Shown: positions 38,536 to 54,376 of the stretch, one piece after another
Numbering within the stretch: position 1 is the stretch's first letter
Layout of the letters: each line of letters opens with the position of its first letter
Sequence record: MZ574432.2
Strand: one strand, 5' to 3'
DNA length: 64,000 nt
Notes under the pieces: model-generated
What the model was told of the DNA's origin: nothing
The model's database searches: none
What the model saw: only the letters and a program-made list of their open reading frames with translations
Position numbers and translations under genes: made by a program

Positions 38536-39291
38536 TCAGCCCCCGTTGGCGATCTGCGACGCCAGCTTGCCGTCGAAACGGCCGGCATGATGCGTCTTCA
38601 GGTACGCCATGATCTCGCCGATCTTGGCGTCGGCCTTGGCCGCCTTGAACGCAGCGATCACGCCACGCAGTTCGTCCTCGGTCAGCGGCGTCGGCGCGGC
38701 CGGCAGATAAGTGCCCAGGAGCGCGGCTTCCATCAGCGCCTTTTCGGCGCCGGCCTTGTCGCCGCGCTTCTCCAGGGCGATGGCCGAGGCCTGCGCGCCC
38801 TTGTAGAAGTTGCGCACGACCTCGATCACCTCCTCGTCGGTCGGGTCTTCCTTGGCCTTCTGGGCCAGATCATACAGCGCCTGCTCCAGACGACCCAGCG
38901 GCCAGCCCTCGGCTTCGGCCTGCTGCTCGGCGGCGGCGATCGCGCTGCCCTCCATGGCGGCGAACTCGTCGTTGACGACGTTGATGGCGTCAAGCACCAC
39001 CTGCTCGCCCCGGCCGGCATAGTCGGCCTGCACCTTTTCCAGGGCGGCGGCGCGCAGCGGCTTGAAGAAGGCGATCGTGTCCTTGCGGGCTTGTTCGAGT
39101 TGACCCAGCGGCCACTTCTCGACCTCGGCCTGCTTGCGGATGGGCTTGGCGCCCTCATTGTACTTGGTCGCCGCGACCGAGTTGGTCAGTTCCGAAAGCA
39201 GCAGCGACAGCAGCGTGGCCTCGGCCACCCGCGCGGGTTTTTCGGACTTGGCGCTGGCGAGGTCGGCGCGGATTACATTGATGAGGCTCAT
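38536..39291 (-). CDS. GatB/YqeY-domain protein with a large internal insertion
   Basis: MSL..IRADL..A N-terminus and TDEEVIEVV..E..LL..YLP..LTEDEL..IGEIM..L...GRFDGK C-terminus. Confidence 0.8.
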   Translation of the reverse strand: MSLINVIRADLASAKSEKPARVAEATLLSLLLSELTNSVAATKYNEGAKPIRKQAEVEKWPLGQLEQARKDTIAFFKPLRAAALEKVQADYAGRGEQVVLDAINVVNDEFAAMEGSAIAAAEQQAEAEGWPLGRLEQALYDLAQKAKEDPTDEEVIEVVRNFYKGAQASAIALEKRGDKAGAEKALMEAALLGTYLPAAPTPLTEDELRGVIAAFKAAKADAKIGEIMAYLKTHHAGRFDGKLASQIANGG

Positions 39292-39706: not shown

Positions 39707-41515
39707 ATGGCTGGCCAATCCGCCAACTCCGTCAATATCGAACGCGTCTCGCGCGCCGTGTCCAACACGACGAACGCGATCGTCCACCCGGAGTACCAGT
39801 ATTGGCTGCCCGACTGGGTCAAGCTACGCGACACCCTGGCTGGCCAGCGCGTCGTCAAGTCCAAGGGCGAGGCCTACCTGCCCCGGAACCTCGGCGCTGA
39901 AGCCCTGGAATACAAGGCCTATCTCGACGGCGCAATCTTCTTCAACATGGTCGATCAGACCCTGAACGGCATGACCGGTCAGGTCTTCCGGCGCGCGCCG
40001 GTGATCCGCAACCTGCCCGAAAAGCTCCAGGACAAGATCATCCACCTGGGCCAGGACGGCTCCAGCCATGTCGCCTTCACCAAGACCGTCGTGCGCGAAG
40101 TCTGCGCCATGGGCCGCTACGGCGTCCTTGTCGACGCGCCCAAGACCTCCGGCGACAGCTACGCCGTCGGCTACCGCGCCGAGGACATCCTGGACTGGAC
40201 CATCGAGAGCATCGGTGGCGTCCAGCGTCTGACCCGCGTGCTGCTGCGTGAATTCAAGCGCGTCCAATCGACCCTGACCGGCCGCGCCAAGGTGCGCAGC
40301 GGCGGCCAGACCTACCAGTACGAGACCGTCTACCGCGAACTGGTCCTGGAATTCGTCGACGGCCGCTGGACCTACTTCCAGAACATCTACGACAAGGGCG
40401 GCCCCCAGGGCGTGCCGACCGACATCATCCGTCCGGTCATCAACGGCAACCCGCTGACGGCGATCCCGTTCGTCTTCTTCGGCCCGACGGGCAACACGCC
40501 CGACTGCGAAAAGCCGCCGCTGATCGACATCGCCGAACTGAACCTGTCGCACTACGAAGACTATGCCGACTTCCAGCACGGCAAGAAGTACACCTCCCTG
40601 CCGATCTACGTCGTGCCGGGCGGCAGCGAAGGCGGCGCCGACGAGTACAAGATCGGTCCCAACACCATTTGGGAAGTGCCGATCAACTCCAAGCCCGAAA
40701 TCCTGGAGTACAAGGGTGACGGCCTGAAGACCCAGGCCAACGCCCTGTCGACCAAGGAGCGCCAGATCGCCGCGATCGGCGGCCGGCTGCTGCCGGGCAT
40801 GGGGCAGGGCATCTCGGAGTCGAGCGAGCAGGCGACCATGCGCGGCGCCTCCGAGCAGTCGATCCTGCTCAACGTCATCCTGTCCGTCCAGGACGGCATG
40901 TCGCTGGTCCTGCGCTACTGGGCCGCGTGGCGCGACGTGCCCATGGCCACCACCGCCCAGGTCCGCTACGTCATCAATTCCAACTTCCTGGTCGGTCACG
41001 TCGACGCCCGCGTGCTGCGCGCCCTACAGATGCTGTGGGAAGCCGGCCTCGTGCCGATCGAGGTGCTGTTCGACAACCTGCGCGACCTGGAGGTCCTGTC
41101 CGACGACTGGACCCTGGAGATGTTCATCGAGCGCATGCAGGACCCGACCGCCTTCGTCAACAACCCCGACGCCCAGGCCAAGACGCGCGGCTACGCCAGC
41201 CGCAAGCAGGAACTGGACGAGGCCGCCCGCAAGATCGAGCAAGGCCAGCAGGACCGCGCCCTGGACATCCAGGAAGAGAGCATCGACGGCCTGGACGACG
41301 GCGACGTGCTGCGCAAGCGCGAGGACCAGCAGATGGACTTCGAGCGCCAGCAGCACGAGGACCAGATGCAGTTCCAGTACGACAAGCTGGCCTCCGACGA
41401 GGCCCTGGCCAAGCAGAAACTGGCGACCCAGAAGGCGATCGCGGCCAAGGCCGCCCAACGCCCGGCCGTCCCGGCGCAACAACCCAGCCGGCCGCCGGCC
41501 GGTGGTCAAACCTAA
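39707..41515 (+). CDS. portal protein (DUF4055-type)
   Basis: 602 aa; HPEY..W..LRD..G..K..YLP N-terminus, IPFVF and PPLIDIAELNLSHY motifs; positioned upstream of the head genes. Confidence 0.85.
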   Translation: MAGQSANSVNIERVSRAVSNTTNAIVHPEYQYWLPDWVKLRDTLAGQRVVKSKGEAYLPRNLGAEALEYKAYLDGAIFFNMVDQTLNGMTGQVFRRAPVIRNLPEKLQDKIIHLGQDGSSHVAFTKTVVREVCAMGRYGVLVDAPKTSGDSYAVGYRAEDILDWTIESIGGVQRLTRVLLREFKRVQSTLTGRAKVRSGGQTYQYETVYRELVLEFVDGRWTYFQNIYDKGGPQGVPTDIIRPVINGNPLTAIPFVFFGPTGNTPDCEKPPLIDIAELNLSHYEDYADFQHGKKYTSLPIYVVPGGSEGGADEYKIGPNTIWEVPINSKPEILEYKGDGLKTQANALSTKERQIAAIGGRLLPGMGQGISESSEQATMRGASEQSILLNVILSVQDGMSLVLRYWAAWRDVPMATTAQVRYVINSNFLVGHVDARVLRALQMLWEAGLVPIEVLFDNLRDLEVLSDDWTLEMFIERMQDPTAFVNNPDAQAKTRGYASRKQELDEAARKIEQGQQDRALDIQEESIDGLDDGDVLRKREDQQMDFERQQHEDQMQFQYDKLASDEALAKQKLATQKAIAAKAAQRPAVPAQQPSRPPAGGQT

Positions 41516-42459: not shown

Positions 42460-42717
42460 ATGTTCGTCAAGCTCACCCACGCCCATGGCAGCGAGGCCAC
42501 CGAGGACCTCTACGTCAACCCGCTCAACATCATCGCGATCCGAGCCGACGGCGCCAACGCCCGGCTCTACGCGACCGATGGCGGCCTTTATCCGGTCGCC
42601 GAGAGCGCCGGCGACGTGGCCGAGGTCTTCGCCCAGGCGCTCGACACCAACCGTGAAAGCAACGACGCCATGCAGACGCTGCTGTCGCTGTTCGTCCAGA
42701 GGAGCCCCGCGTCGTGA
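42460..42717 (+). CDS. FlbD/SwrD-like small protein 2
   Basis: MFVKLT..YVNP..I..I..G..Y.V.ES...V. Confidence 0.6.
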   Translation: MFVKLTHAHGSEATEDLYVNPLNIIAIRADGANARLYATDGGLYPVAESAGDVAEVFAQALDTNRESNDAMQTLLSLFVQRSPAS

Positions 42718-43052
42718 TCATCCTGCATCGCAAGCACCCGGTCGGCGGCGGCCAGTTCACCATCCAGCGCATCGCCATTCGACCGAGCGCCCTGGACTTG
42801 ATCATCGAGACCGCCCCCGACGCCCCGGCCACCATCGAAGTCAGCGGCGACCGCTATGACGTCGTCGAGACCTTCGAGCAGATCACCGGCCTGATCGGCT
42901 GCTGGAAGCACAGCGACATCCTGATCAGGGGTCACGCCCTGGCCAAGGGCGAATCGCTCCAGGACTTCCATCTGGCCGGCATCGAGTACGAGCCCGGCGC
43001 CGCTGAGAAGCACGAAGAGATGGTTCTGGTCTTGAACCCCTGGACCGAATGA
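42714..43052 (+). CDS. FlbD/SwrD-like small protein 3
   Basis: MIILHR..I.P..I.ET..TI.VSG..Y.V.ET.EQI. Confidence 0.55.
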   Translation: MIILHRKHPVGGGQFTIQRIAIRPSALDLIIETAPDAPATIEVSGDRYDVVETFEQITGLIGCWKHSDILIRGHALAKGESLQDFHLAGIEYEPGAAEKHEEMVLVLNPWTE

Positions 43053-43324
43053 TCGTCGTTCACTGCCATTTCGCGCCCAACGAGGCGATCTTCCTCCACC
43101 CCGAGCGGATCACCAAGTTGCACAAGCCCTCGACCACGCAACTGTGGGTCGAAGGCTATGAGTGCTGCCTTCAGATCAAGGAGACCCCCGAACAGGTCGC
43201 CAAGCTCTGCGCGGCCTGGGCCGATCGCTGGCGGTGGGAAGACTTCAACAACGCAACCGCCAACTACGCCGTCTTCGACAAGGAAGCCGGCGTGGTGGTC
43301 TTCAACTTCAGCGAAAGACCCTGA
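43049..43324 (+). CDS. FlbD/SwrD-like small protein 4
   Basis: IFLHPERI..T.L.V.G..I.ET.EQV. Confidence 0.5.
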   Translation: MIVVHCHFAPNEAIFLHPERITKLHKPSTTQLWVEGYECCLQIKETPEQVAKLCAAWADRWRWEDFNNATANYAVFDKEAGVVVFNFSERP

Positions 43325-43572
43325 TGAGCAAGCACACCGACAGCCTCATGGCTGACTGCCAGAAGCTGGTCGCCCTGACCGAGAAGATCACCGAGGCCTC
43401 CGACGGCCTGCGCGACCTGATCGTCCAGATTCCGAGGAGCCGCGAGGGCGCCCTGGCCCTGACCAAGCTCGACGAGTTGGACTACTGGGCCGGCCGCGCC
43501 ATGCGCGAAATCCTCGAACCGATCCTGGGCGAGCTTCAGGAAGCCGGCCTCGTCAAGATCACCGAAGCCTAA
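43324..43572 (+). CDS. Acb2/Tad1-like helical-hairpin protein (candidate anti-defence)
   Basis: SREGALALTKLDELDYWAGRAM motif. Confidence 0.55.
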   Translation: MSKHTDSLMADCQKLVALTEKITEASDGLRDLIVQIPRSREGALALTKLDELDYWAGRAMREILEPILGELQEAGLVKITEA

Positions 43573-43631
43573 CTGGCCACATTTGGCCAGTTAGCCCCGG
43601 TTCTCCCTCACATCTGGCCACATTTGGCCAC
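43570..43631. repeat. two copies of the palindrome CTGGCCA-CATT-TGGCCA(G/C)
   Basis: First copy has a 10-bp stem (43570-43593); second copy at 43614-43631. Confidence 0.8.
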
Positions 43632-43656
43632 TTAAGCCTAAGCCAAAGACCACGCT

Positions 43657-44481
43657 ATGACCCTCACCTACACCAAGGCGCTCGTCTGCGCCGCTGAGCA
43701 CGCGCTTGCCGAAGCCATGGCCACCAAGGCCATCTATCCCGGCAACGAGCACATGACCGCCGCCATGGGCGAGGAGTTTGGCGAGGTCTGTCAGGCCCTC
43801 CTCGACGCCAGCCGCGCCCCCAAGAGCGAGACCGCCCAGGCCAAGGTCTACGCCGAGGCCATGCAACTGGCCGCCATGGCCCTGCGCATCGCCATCGAAG
43901 GCAGCGCCGAATTCCCCTATGCCTTCAAGGACGACTACGCCGCCGCCTTCAAGCCGACGACGTCCAAGAAGTCCGCGCCGGCCGACAAGCCCAAGAAGGT
44001 CAAGGAGCAGGACAAGGCCCAGGCCGACGCCGAGGCCCTGAAGAAACTCTTCGACGAACTGCGCCGGTTCGAACAGGTCAAGAAGACCGAGCCCTGGGAA
44101 TATGACATCCGCTATGGCGCCGCACCAGCGCCCCGCGCCATGTGGGCCGGAGGTGGCTCGGGCACGCCGGGCGTCGGCCTGGGCGTCAGCAGCCAAGGCG
44201 CTGCGAGCGGAGGCCACTGCGTTGGTGGCGCGGGCGGAGCCTACAGCTACAACGGCGCCGCCGAAACCGACCGACTGGTCGCCGAGACCCTGGCCAAGGC
44301 TAAGGCAGCCGCCGCCGTCAGCAAGAAGATCGCCGCCAAGACCGACGGAGCCTTGACCGTCGACAAGGACCCCGCCCCGCCGACGGGTGACGACGCCCTG
44401 TCGGCCACGCTCGACATCATCGGCGGCCTTTTCGGCGCGATCGCCGACAACATCCCCGATCTGGACATCGACTTCTCGTGA
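43657..44481 (+). CDS. MazG-like nucleotide pyrophosphohydrolase domain + low-complexity C-terminus
   Basis: EEFGEV..EAMQLAAMALR motif. Confidence 0.65.
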   Translation: MTLTYTKALVCAAEHALAEAMATKAIYPGNEHMTAAMGEEFGEVCQALLDASRAPKSETAQAKVYAEAMQLAAMALRIAIEGSAEFPYAFKDDYAAAFKPTTSKKSAPADKPKKVKEQDKAQADAEALKKLFDELRRFEQVKKTEPWEYDIRYGAAPAPRAMWAGGGSGTPGVGLGVSSQGAASGGHCVGGAGGAYSYNGAAETDRLVAETLAKAKAAAAVSKKIAAKTDGALTVDKDPAPPTGDDALSATLDIIGGLFGAIADNIPDLDIDFS

Positions 44482-44654
44482 CCGAGCGCCCCACCATCCA
44501 AGTCCTGGCCATGCACGAGGACGAGCACGCCGTCTTCGTCCCCACGCCCGAGCAGGCCGCCGCGATCGCCAACGGCTCCTTGCGCATCGGCATCATCCGC
44601 TACGCGCCCAACCCCGACTATGTGCCGCCCGCCGGCCAGGACGCCGCCCCGTGA
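44478..44654 (+). CDS. hypothetical protein (58 aa)
   Basis: GTGA-coupled at both ends. Confidence 0.6.
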   Translation: MTERPTIQVLAMHEDEHAVFVPTPEQAAAIANGSLRIGIIRYAPNPDYVPPAGQDAAP

Positions 44655-45970
44655 TCTCCATCACCATCGACAAGATCGCCCAGGAGCTTTCCCTGGACGA
44701 GACCGCCTCGGTCCCCGCCCGCTTCCTGGCCAACGCCATCCTGCTGCGCGCGATCGAGGACGACGACCTGCGCGCCGAGCATGAAGCGCTCGAACGCGTC
44801 GTCGAGAGCCTGCGCGACAAGCTCGAAGACGCCGAGCGCAAGATCGATCGCGCTTTCGAAACCGGCCGCGACGCGGTCATGGTCACCACCCAGATCGAGC
44901 GCGCCAAGCAGCGCGAACTGCTCGACGAGATCGGCGACCTGAAAGCCAAGCTCGTCGTCGGCGATCCCGACCTGATCGCCAAGCTGCGTCGCGACATCCG
45001 CGACTACCAGACCCGCGAAACCCGCGCCGACACCAAGCTGGCCGAGTTCCGCGACAACAACATCGGCCTCTTGAAGGACCGCGAGGCGCTCGTCGAGGAA
45101 AACGACGCCCTGGTCGAGGAACTGAGGCTCGCCGACGAAGCGCGTGGCGCGGCCGAGGAACTGAGCCATGGTCTCTTGGCGCGCGCCCGCGCCGCCGAGG
45201 ACGCCCACGATGCGCTCCAGGAGGCGCTGAAGAAGGCGCAAGGCGAGATCGCCACCGCCAGGGTCCGCTACGACGACCTGCTCAAGTCCAGGGCCAACCT
45301 CCAGAGCCGCGTCGACAACGCCCTCCAGGCCCAGGAAGACGGCGAGCGCGAGCGCCGCATCATGCTGGCCAATCAGCGTGACATCGAAGCGCGCATGAAC
45401 CAGTACAAGCGCGTCGCCGAGAAGCTCGAACAGACCGCCGACGTGGCCTATGTCGACAAGCTGATCCGCGAGAACGAAAAGCTCACCGCGCGCGACCGCG
45501 AACTGTCCACGACCCTGTTCGACCGCGATCGCACCATCGCCGAACTCAAGGCCCGGCTCAACGAGCCCGAAAATCGCCCCGCCAAGGACCTGATCGACAC
45601 GATCAACGCCCAGGCCAAGCGAATGGGCGAGCTTGAGGCCAAGCTGGCCCGTGGCGATGGCTTCGAGGCCGCCAGCATCGAGCGCACCACCGCCGAGGTC
45701 CCCGTCCTGGTCGCCTGCGAGAGCGAAGTCGACCTCCTGAGCCTGCGCAACAGCTTCTGGCGCACCTCCCTGGCCGGCCATCTGGTCTTCCGCGTCATCG
45801 GCCACGACGAAGTGCCCGATCACCCGCTCGGCGGCATCATCGTCATGCCCGAGCAGGCCAAGCGCCTCAAGCGCGCCGCCGCCAAGGGCCAGGACCGCAA
45901 CGAATGGCTGGCCAAGGCCCAAGCCCAACTCGTCGACGGCGCCGTGCAAGTCACGATCGCCAAGAACTAG
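44651..45970 (+). CDS. long coiled-coil protein (439 aa)
   Basis: Heptad-rich in E/R/A/L; GTGA coupling. Confidence 0.8.
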   Translation: MISITIDKIAQELSLDETASVPARFLANAILLRAIEDDDLRAEHEALERVVESLRDKLEDAERKIDRAFETGRDAVMVTTQIERAKQRELLDEIGDLKAKLVVGDPDLIAKLRRDIRDYQTRETRADTKLAEFRDNNIGLLKDREALVEENDALVEELRLADEARGAAEELSHGLLARARAAEDAHDALQEALKKAQGEIATARVRYDDLLKSRANLQSRVDNALQAQEDGERERRIMLANQRDIEARMNQYKRVAEKLEQTADVAYVDKLIRENEKLTARDRELSTTLFDRDRTIAELKARLNEPENRPAKDLIDTINAQAKRMGELEAKLARGDGFEAASIERTTAEVPVLVACESEVDLLSLRNSFWRTSLAGHLVFRVIGHDEVPDHPLGGIIVMPEQAKRLKRAAAKGQDRNEWLAKAQAQLVDGAVQVTIAKN

Positions 45971-53491: not shown

Positions 53492-54376
53492 ATGATCATC
53501 GACCGCTTGCAAAAGGACGGCCTGATTGCGCCGCCCAAGTGGCTGCCGGCCAACACCCACTACCTGACCCAGATGGGCTCGATCGCCTATGCGGTCCACA
53601 CGCCCGAGAGCGACATCGACGTGGTGGGCTTCGCCATCCCGGCCAAGACCGAGGTCTTCCCGCATCTGGCCGGCCACATCGAAGGCTTCGGCGCGCCGCG
53701 CAACCCGTTCTCGTCCTGGGCGCAGCATCACGTCCAGCCGCCGGGCGGCCAGGAATACGACTTCACCGTCTACTCGATCATCAAGTTCTTCCAGCTTTGC
53801 CTGGAGAACAACCCCAACATGATCGACACCCTGTTCACCCCGCGCCGCTGCGTGCTGCACGCCTCCAACATCGGCAACTACGTGCTGGAGAACCGGCGCC
53901 TGTTCCTGCACAAGGGAAGCTGCCGCAAGTTCCGGGGCTATGCCTTCTCGCAACTGGCCAAGATCAGGTCCAAGACCGCCTCCCAGAACCCCAAGCGCCA
54001 AGCCTCGATCGACGCCCACGGCTACGACGTCAAGTTCGCCTATCACGTCGTGCGGCTGGCGCTCGAAGCCGAGCAAATCCTGACCGAGCACGACCTGAAC
54101 CTGGAGGCCAACGCCCCCATCCTGCGCGACATCCGCGCCGGCAACTGGTCGCTGGATCACCTGGAAAAGTGGTTCGAGGTCAAGGAGATCGCCCTGGAGG
54201 AACTGCTGGGCAAGTCCGACCTGCGCGCCACGCCCGACGAGGACGCCATCCGCACGGTCCTGCTCAACGCCCTGGAGATGCACTACGGCACCATCTCCCA
54301 GGCGATCGCGCGCGAGACCAATGTCGAGCGGGTCCTGAGCGAGATGCGGGCGGTCATCGACCGGCACGCCGCATGA
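53492..54376 (+). CDS. Pol-beta superfamily nucleotidyltransferase (PF10127/RlaP-like)
   Basis: GS.AY....ESDIDVVG, NPNMIDTLF and K.AYHVVRL motifs. Confidence 0.8.
   Translation: MIIDRLQKDGLIAPPKWLPANTHYLTQMGSIAYAVHTPESDIDVVGFAIPAKTEVFPHLAGHIEGFGAPRNPFSSWAQHHVQPPGGQEYDFTVYSIIKFFQLCLENNPNMIDTLFTPRRCVLHASNIGNYVLENRRLFLHKGSCRKFRGYAFSQLAKIRSKTASQNPKRQASIDAHGYDVKFAYHVVRLALEAEQILTEHDLNLEANAPILRDIRAGNWSLDHLEKWFEVKEIALEELLGKSDLRATPDEDAIRTVLLNALEMHYGTISQAIARETNVERVLSEMRAVIDRHAA

Follow-up and report, generated by a model that had tools for sequence, protein, structure and literature searches.

The Caulobacter jumbo phage BL47 carries a small gene, CcrBL47_gp097, annotated "hypothetical protein", whose product is most likely a sponge for a nucleotide signal of host immunity, a reading to which, judging from the sequence, we assign a probability of about 0.6. 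The protein can be placed with good support in the Acb2/Tad1 sponge superfamily, as a rare and divergent member that consists of the hairpin only, and the gene is likely to be a counter-defence gene of an already known kind. By analogy, the hairpin formed by the 82 residues of gp097 would associate into a homo-oligomer, with a hexamer assembled as a trimer of dimers as the expected form; the oligomer would sequester the host's nucleotide immune signal, and with the signal sequestered the effector would never be switched on. Among the ligands that may be considered, a cyclic trinucleotide, as used in type III CBASS or NucC-type signalling, would be the best-supported class.

The gene and its product

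The gene (protein accession UTU09383.1) lies on the + strand at positions 43324-43572 of the window, by which we mean the whole 64,000-nucleotide stretch that was analyzed, the first 64 kb of record MZ574432.2; the BL47 genome in this record measures 326.8 kb, and the host is C. vibrioides CB15. The reading frame, which coincides with the GenBank CDS, runs through 82 codons without an internal stop, its ATG overlaps the stop codon of gp096 by one base (TGATG), and its product is 100% identical in seven Bertelyvirus records (tblastn). A longer form from an upstream in-frame GTG is unsupported, since in CcrSC, CcrBL9, and two metagenomic contigs the orthologues all begin with M(T)SKH. Each phage carries a single copy. 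The features of the gene are as follows.

43324-43572, + strand: gp097 (P0001), divergent member of the Acb2/Tad1 hairpin family, with an open frame, a GenBank CDS, syntenic orthologues, a PF24729 match (20.1 bits), and an hhalign probability of 98.1%
43330-43425, + strand: predicted helix 1, residues 3-34, with the N-terminus M-S-K-H conserved in the clade and with neither Tyr nor Phe (AF2 pLDDT 91-98, orthologue alignment, composition)
43438-43503, + strand: family motif SREGALALTKLDELDYWAGRAM, residues 39-60, comprising the end of the loop and helix 2 up to its middle, with R40 and T47 invariant in 26 family members; the motif aligns to Acb2_43, T4 Vs.4, CbTad1, and CmTad1
43441-43464, + strand: codons R40 to T47 (R40, A43, L44, and T47), putative counterparts of the cyclic-trinucleotide pocket, by profile register and with roles taken from the literature (PMC10312549, 10.1101/2023.11.15.567273)
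43441-43542, + strand: predicted helix 2, residues 40-73, including the clade-specific C-terminal extension LEPILxELxxAG (AF2 model and alignments)

An earlier note on this DNA had described a helix-loop-helix bearing the family motif and had remarked that the GYR motif of Acb2 is missing. Both observations hold. AlphaFold2, run on a 26-sequence alignment, models gp097 with a mean pLDDT of 94 as two helices, residues 3-34 and 40-73, between which lies a loop of 5 residues, and the motif occupies exactly residues 39-60; by composition, the G-Y motif is absent, and the first aromatic residue of the protein is Y54. The modeled architecture is that of PF24729 proteins, namely, two long antiparallel helices, the second of which opens with R-x2-A-x-A-x-T-x-L (R40, A43, A45, T47, and L49). 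Through its N-terminus and C-terminal extension, the hairpin of the clade is about four turns longer than that of the minimal family members of 56-68 aa. The arcs taken up by strongly hydrophobic residues are wide on both helices, about 220 and 280 degrees, which would exceed what one hairpin interface buries and thus hints faintly at a higher-order assembly of gp097.

Homology to the Acb2/Tad1 hairpin family

The hairpin of gp097 is very probably homologous to the Acb2/Tad1 hairpin domain. The sole Pfam match of gp097 alone is PF24729 (Acb2_Tad1_hairpin), with 20.1 bits and an E value of 7e-4 over profile positions 11-55 of 58, a score which, like those of the CcrSC and CcrBL9 orthologues (21.7-22.1 bits), falls below the gathering cut-off of 27 bits. 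The best PHROG is phrog_1454 (E 4e-7); canonical FTYH-type PF24729 proteins from IMG/VR reach 71-75 bits on the Pfam profile and 88-101 bits on phrog_1454. P0003 and P0005, two of the four clade relatives described below, have PF24729 in the precomputed Pfam column. In an hhalign comparison, the gp097 clade was matched over residues 20-62 to 18 canonical members, none of which was drawn from the clade itself, with a probability of 98.1% and an E value of 7e-14. When the four-sequence clade profile (A2) was searched against all solved structures, the best eight matches were Acb2 or Tad1, ahead of any unrelated protein: Acb2_43 (9ptq) with an E value of 7.9e-5, T4 Vs.4 (7uq2) with 0.011, and six Tad1 sequences with about 0.06. 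In the ESM Atlas feature search, the top three hits were PF24729 clusters (score 0.89, with 193-209 of 256 features in common). Among the fold comparisons, only the one with BFVD, a library of predicted viral structures, showed an enrichment, in proteins that bear the name 'Acb2/Tad1 hairpin domain-containing' (30-39% identity).

The relationship to Acb2 and Tad1 that the earlier note had suggested is accordingly borne out as homology by PF24729, phrog_1454, hhalign, and the profile search of solved structures, and the R..A.A.T.L motif that it had named as common to the family is present in JBD67 Acb2, CbTad1, CmTad1, and gp097. The Foldseek check that it had proposed did not discriminate. Searched against the PDB as a monomer, gp097 matched Tad1 and Acb2_43 at E values of about 1.5-1.8 among unrelated hairpins, with no match at E<=0.001; VIA-align returned Z scores of 8-10 for dozens of unrelated helical hairpins and placed T4 Vs.4 at rank 34 (Z 8.2), and the ESM Atlas structure search returned hairpins of the HisKA/HAMP type. 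Since any two-helix hairpin matches equally well, the case for homology rests on sequence profiles and not on the fold.

The clade is rare, as HMMER, run exhaustively over 1.84 billion cluster representatives, yielded only four relatives at E<=0.001, among them P0004. A word-index search with the single gp097 sequence returned the self-match alone, and a scan of genome contigs gave one locus, on a Flavobacteriaceae MAG contig, and no prophage copy in Caulobacter. Public runs yielded no sign of gp097 expression: a 92%-identical piece of 151 nt from a gp097 orthologue was found in one DNA run, and a wastewater metatranscriptome contained a 207-nt contig that covers only part of the gene after gp097. 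Two further arrangements of the hairpin were seen. P0004, a metagenomic protein of 138 aa and no orthologue of gp097, has a tandem double hairpin with the motif copies …ASRELSLAFTKLDELSMW… and …ACRERSCALTKLDEAAMWAGR…, which amounts to a covalent 'dimer' of the unit, and in the IMG/VR relatives L003-L008, L012, L016, L018, and L019 the hairpin stands behind a Cys-rich N-terminal domain (weak DUF7685 match) and coiled coils.

Pocket residues and the candidate ligand

In the hexamers of Acb2 and Tad1, cyclic trinucleotides (cA3 and cAAG) are held on the three-fold axis (PMC10312549, 10.1101/2023.11.15.567273). The phosphates of cA3 are bound by R67/T74 in Acb2, R88/T95 in CmTad1, and R90/T97 in CbTad1, and mutants in these residues abolish or markedly reduce binding (PMC10312549, 10.1101/2023.11.15.567273); in PaMx33 Acb2, R67A abolishes cA3 binding and T74A lowers the affinity, while the binding of cGAMP is unaffected by either (PMC10312549). 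In CmTad1, R88 and T95 contact cA3 alongside C87, A91, and M92, and when Q98/E99/M102/W103/K106 are mutated, the hexamer is broken and cA3 is no longer bound (10.1101/2023.11.15.567273). According to HMM registers and alignment A4, R40/A43/L44/T47 of gp097 align with the cyclic-trinucleotide-binding residues of both Acb2 and Tad1, and two of the four, R40 and T47, do not vary among the 26 family members aligned. The counterparts in PaMx33 Acb2 are R67/A70/I71/T74, the R..A.A.T.L motif lying in the C-terminal hairpin of PaMx33 and JBD67 Acb2 and of T4 Vs.4 (8H2J, 7UQ2). With Tad1 (CbTad1 and CmTad1; 7UAV, 7UAW, and 8KBB-8KBH), the motif is shared through the two C-terminal helices: the cA3 contacts C87/R88/A91/M92/T95 of CmTad1 correspond to S39/R40/A43/L44/T47, its hexamer interface Q98/E99/M102/W103/K106 corresponds to D50/E51/Y54/W55/R58, and at all these positions gp097 is identical to CmTad1 or conservatively substituted. 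Beside the wide hydrophobic arcs, the conserved interface counterparts are an indirect hint at a higher-order assembly of gp097. The Arg/Thr pair R90/T97 at the trimer interface of CbTad1 corresponds to R40/T47, a match of sequence conservation alone. In Tad1, the pair has an additional part in hexamer formation (10.1101/2023.11.15.567273), and for this reason its conservation by itself is no proof of ligand binding.

The second pockets of both families are missing. Acb2 sensu stricto has a dinucleotide pocket formed by the Tyr of the N-terminal G-Y-[RK] motif (Y11) and by Lys26 (K26), neither of which was found in gp097 on alignment with JBD67 Acb2 and T4 Vs.4; the N-terminal segment itself is absent, the N-terminus of gp097 being about 10-25 residues shorter, and identity to these two proteins is 18-22%. 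The PHROG assignment also differs (phrog_1454/15810 for gp097, phrog_717 for Acb2 sensu stricto). Tad1 proteins, at 120-140 aa, have an N-terminal antiparallel beta-sheet domain, whereas gp097, with 82 aa and an all-helical AF2 model, has none, and the residues of the gcADPR/dinucleotide pocket are likewise absent, with N92, R109, and R113 of CbTad1 replaced by G42, A59, and I63 (register from the clade-profile HMM alignment; chain index equals paper number plus 1). Since both known second pockets are missing, the binding of a dinucleotide or of a cADPR-type molecule would need another pocket, possibly at the distal end of the hairpin, where the conserved N-terminus and the C-terminal extension meet. 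The putative trinucleotide pocket is thus the sole one whose residues are visibly conserved in gp097.

The closest known likeness is to the short hairpin 'Acb2' homologues (Acb2_25, Acb2_28, Acb2_22, and Acb2_43), small phage proteins which have the same hairpin and the R-x6-T / TKL[DE]E / W motif. By inspection, Acb2_25 (79 aa) resembles gp097 also in its WAG[KR] continuation and C-terminal helical extension. Acb2_43 (PDB 9PTQ, 76 aa), which heads the list of solved structures matched by the clade profile, forms its 3'cADPR pocket from N- and C-terminal beta-strands, whereas gp097 is predicted to be helical from residue 3. The gp097 clade differs from these homologues in having its own conserved N-terminus (MSKH) and its own C-terminal extension. 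Several such proteins without GY, e.g., numbers 28 (50 aa), 21 (70 aa), and 25 (79 aa) in Table S2 of Hadary et al., inhibit the 3'3'-cGAMP CBASS of E. albertii in vivo (10.1101/2025.08.24.671296), and loss of the GY motif is therefore compatible with a sponge. On the other hand, Acb2 no. 22 (60 aa), which closely resembles the protein of locus L009, showed no activity against defence wherever it was testable, and the panel included no cyclic-trinucleotide system (10.1101/2025.08.24.671296). In that study, which worked with a set of 4,204 sequences, the supplementary tables name neither Caulobacter nor accessions of the gp097 clade.

On the side of the host, the reference genome of C. vibrioides, used here as a control genome, has no match to SMODS (CD-NTase), so that a CBASS target of gp097 would have to be in other hosts; a SIR2_2 match is absent from it as well. 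The same genome has TIR_2 and ThsB_TIR (PF08937) matches above the cut-offs; in none of the other 13 of 14 control genomes does ThsB_TIR exceed its cut-off. These matches hint at a TIR-based signalling system in C. vibrioides that would do without the type I ThsA, and a TIR-derived signal is a live alternative as the ligand of gp097.

A bolder version of the sponge reading, which we regard as distinctly unlikely, is that the Bertelyvirus clade represents a stripped-down, lengthened hairpin sponge that has either (i) kept the trinucleotide pocket on the three-fold axis alone or (ii) formed a new pocket at the extended distal end, from MSKH and LEPILxELxxAG, for a signal new to the family; candidates for such a signal in Caulobacter would be a TIR-derived signal or a housekeeping messenger, e.g., c-di-GMP.

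Genomic setting and rival readings

The portal gene (39707-41515) is separated from the genes for the scaffold and the major head protein (56.6-58.6 kb) by 15 kb with about 35 small genes of unknown function, among which is gp097. In CcrSC, CcrBL9, and three phiCbK-like contigs from metagenomes, its orthologues occupy the same place after the DUF4055 portal, and no family member was found across the 208 kb of RBC57, a phiCbK-like phage with a portal of 47% identity. When BL47 is compared with CcrSC, identity is 48% for gp097 versus 88% for the portal. The Nei-Gojobori dN/dS is about 1 for BL47 against CcrSC, CcrBL9, or P0002, with synonymous sites compressed by GC3 bias and divergence, and for that reason we take the relative identity as the sign of fast evolution. 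In evolving fast and being confined to one lineage, gp097 follows a tendency of counter-defence genes. A place within the head module is no argument against a sponge, because acb2 of JBD67 is also found inside the head module, with the major head gene on one side and the head-tail adaptor gene on the other. The fixed post-portal position in six phages and contigs would also fit a conserved role internal to the phage.

Several observations concern the neighborhood of the gene. Over 42714-45970, gp095, gp096, gp097, gp098, and gp100 are 40-49% identical between BL47 and CcrSC, gp090-092 and gp099 are 69-77% identical, and gp093 and gp094 have no CcrSC counterpart; within the head module, 42714-45970 is thereby marked out as an accessory block that evolves fast. 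A MazG-like N-terminus, proposed by eye for gp098, was dropped, as neither Pfam nor solved structures supported it. Over and after the stop codon of gp097, at 43569-43594, there is a perfect 11-bp palindrome, CTAACTGGCCA-CATT-TGGCCAGTTAG, which as RNA would fold into a strong stem-loop that lacks a T-run (z -3.2 over a stretch of 86 nt). A second copy of TGGCCACATTTGGCCA follows at 43615-43630, 41 nt downstream of the first, and these are the only two copies in the window, versus 0.06 expected by chance. Both elements are conserved before the next gene in CcrSC, CcrBL9, and the P0002 contig and could be an operator/promoter element or a 3'-end hairpin. Also between the portal and scaffold genes, at 53492-54376 (+ strand), is a gene for a 294-aa RlaP / DNA polymerase beta-like nucleotidyltransferase (PF10127, E 2e-14; phrog_388, E 6e-45), which has the product name 'nucleotidyltransferase' in common with T4 nrdC.11. 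Immediately upstream of the portal, on the opposite strand (38536-39291, - strand), the C-terminal 110 residues of the encoded protein match phrog_1460 ('tRNA amidotransferase', E 3e-24).

These data can be read in ways other than an immune sponge. The protein may be homologous to the sponges and yet be none itself, its hairpin serving as an oligomerisation module in a phage-internal or host-protein-binding role, e.g., in head or portal assembly, with the second ligand pocket lost. We hold this to be fairly unlikely, though it is the main rival. It draws on the fixed place downstream of the DUF4055 portal in BL47, CcrSC, CcrBL9, and the three metagenomic contigs, on the absence of both known second pockets, on the contribution of the Tad1 R/T pair to hexamer formation, and on the fact that several of the short Acb2 homologues that were tested showed no detectable activity. 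Against it, the interval from portal to scaffold is a run of small, fast-evolving genes of unknown function and no tight structural cassette, and, because RBC57 does without a member, the family is not essential for that head type. Moreover, all characterised members of the Acb2/Tad1 hairpin superfamily are, to our knowledge, sponges.

Should gp097 be a sponge, its target might still be a housekeeping second messenger, in Caulobacter most obviously c-di-GMP, through which the phage would alter the cell cycle or motility of its flagellotropic host. The absence of SMODS from the host reference genome would, indirectly, suit such a target, and a study of this phage group reportedly links it to the control of the host cell cycle via CtrA sites. 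In addition, HgmTad2, a sponge of another family, binds c-di-GMP with high affinity (10.1101/2023.11.15.567273). However, no residue of gp097 points to c-di-GMP, and, with genes for TIR_2 and ThsB_TIR domains present in the host reference genome, an immune target may exist in the host. Furthermore, we know of no member of the Acb2/Tad1 hairpin family that targets a non-immune signal, and this target seems to us highly improbable. We give equally little credence to a generic coiled-coil hairpin whose likeness to Acb2 and Tad1 arose by chance. The sub-threshold Pfam score would be in keeping with it, as would the monomer fold searches, in which any helical hairpin is matched and T4 Vs.4 comes far down the ranking, but this reading is disfavoured by the hhalign E value, by the eight best solved-structure matches, all of them sponges, and by a 12-residue core motif that is nearly identical to that of the canonical members.

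To conclude, an immune-signal sponge is the reading of gp097 that we prefer. The Acb2/Tad1 family is large and already characterised, so that gp097 would add a member and no new mechanism; in a limited literature search, we found no earlier report of a counter-defence candidate of the Acb2/Tad1 type in Caulobacter phages. In this group of jumbo phages, almost every gene of the region is annotated "hypothetical", and for one of them the assignment gives a first lead to its function. With TIR-type genes and no CD-NTase in the reference genome of the host species, one may further ask on which signalling defence Caulobacter actually relies. Since the gp097 clade consists of the hairpin only, with both second pockets absent, it would offer a clean natural test of whether the Arg/Thr pocket alone is sufficient for cyclic trinucleotide binding and for the protection of the phage.
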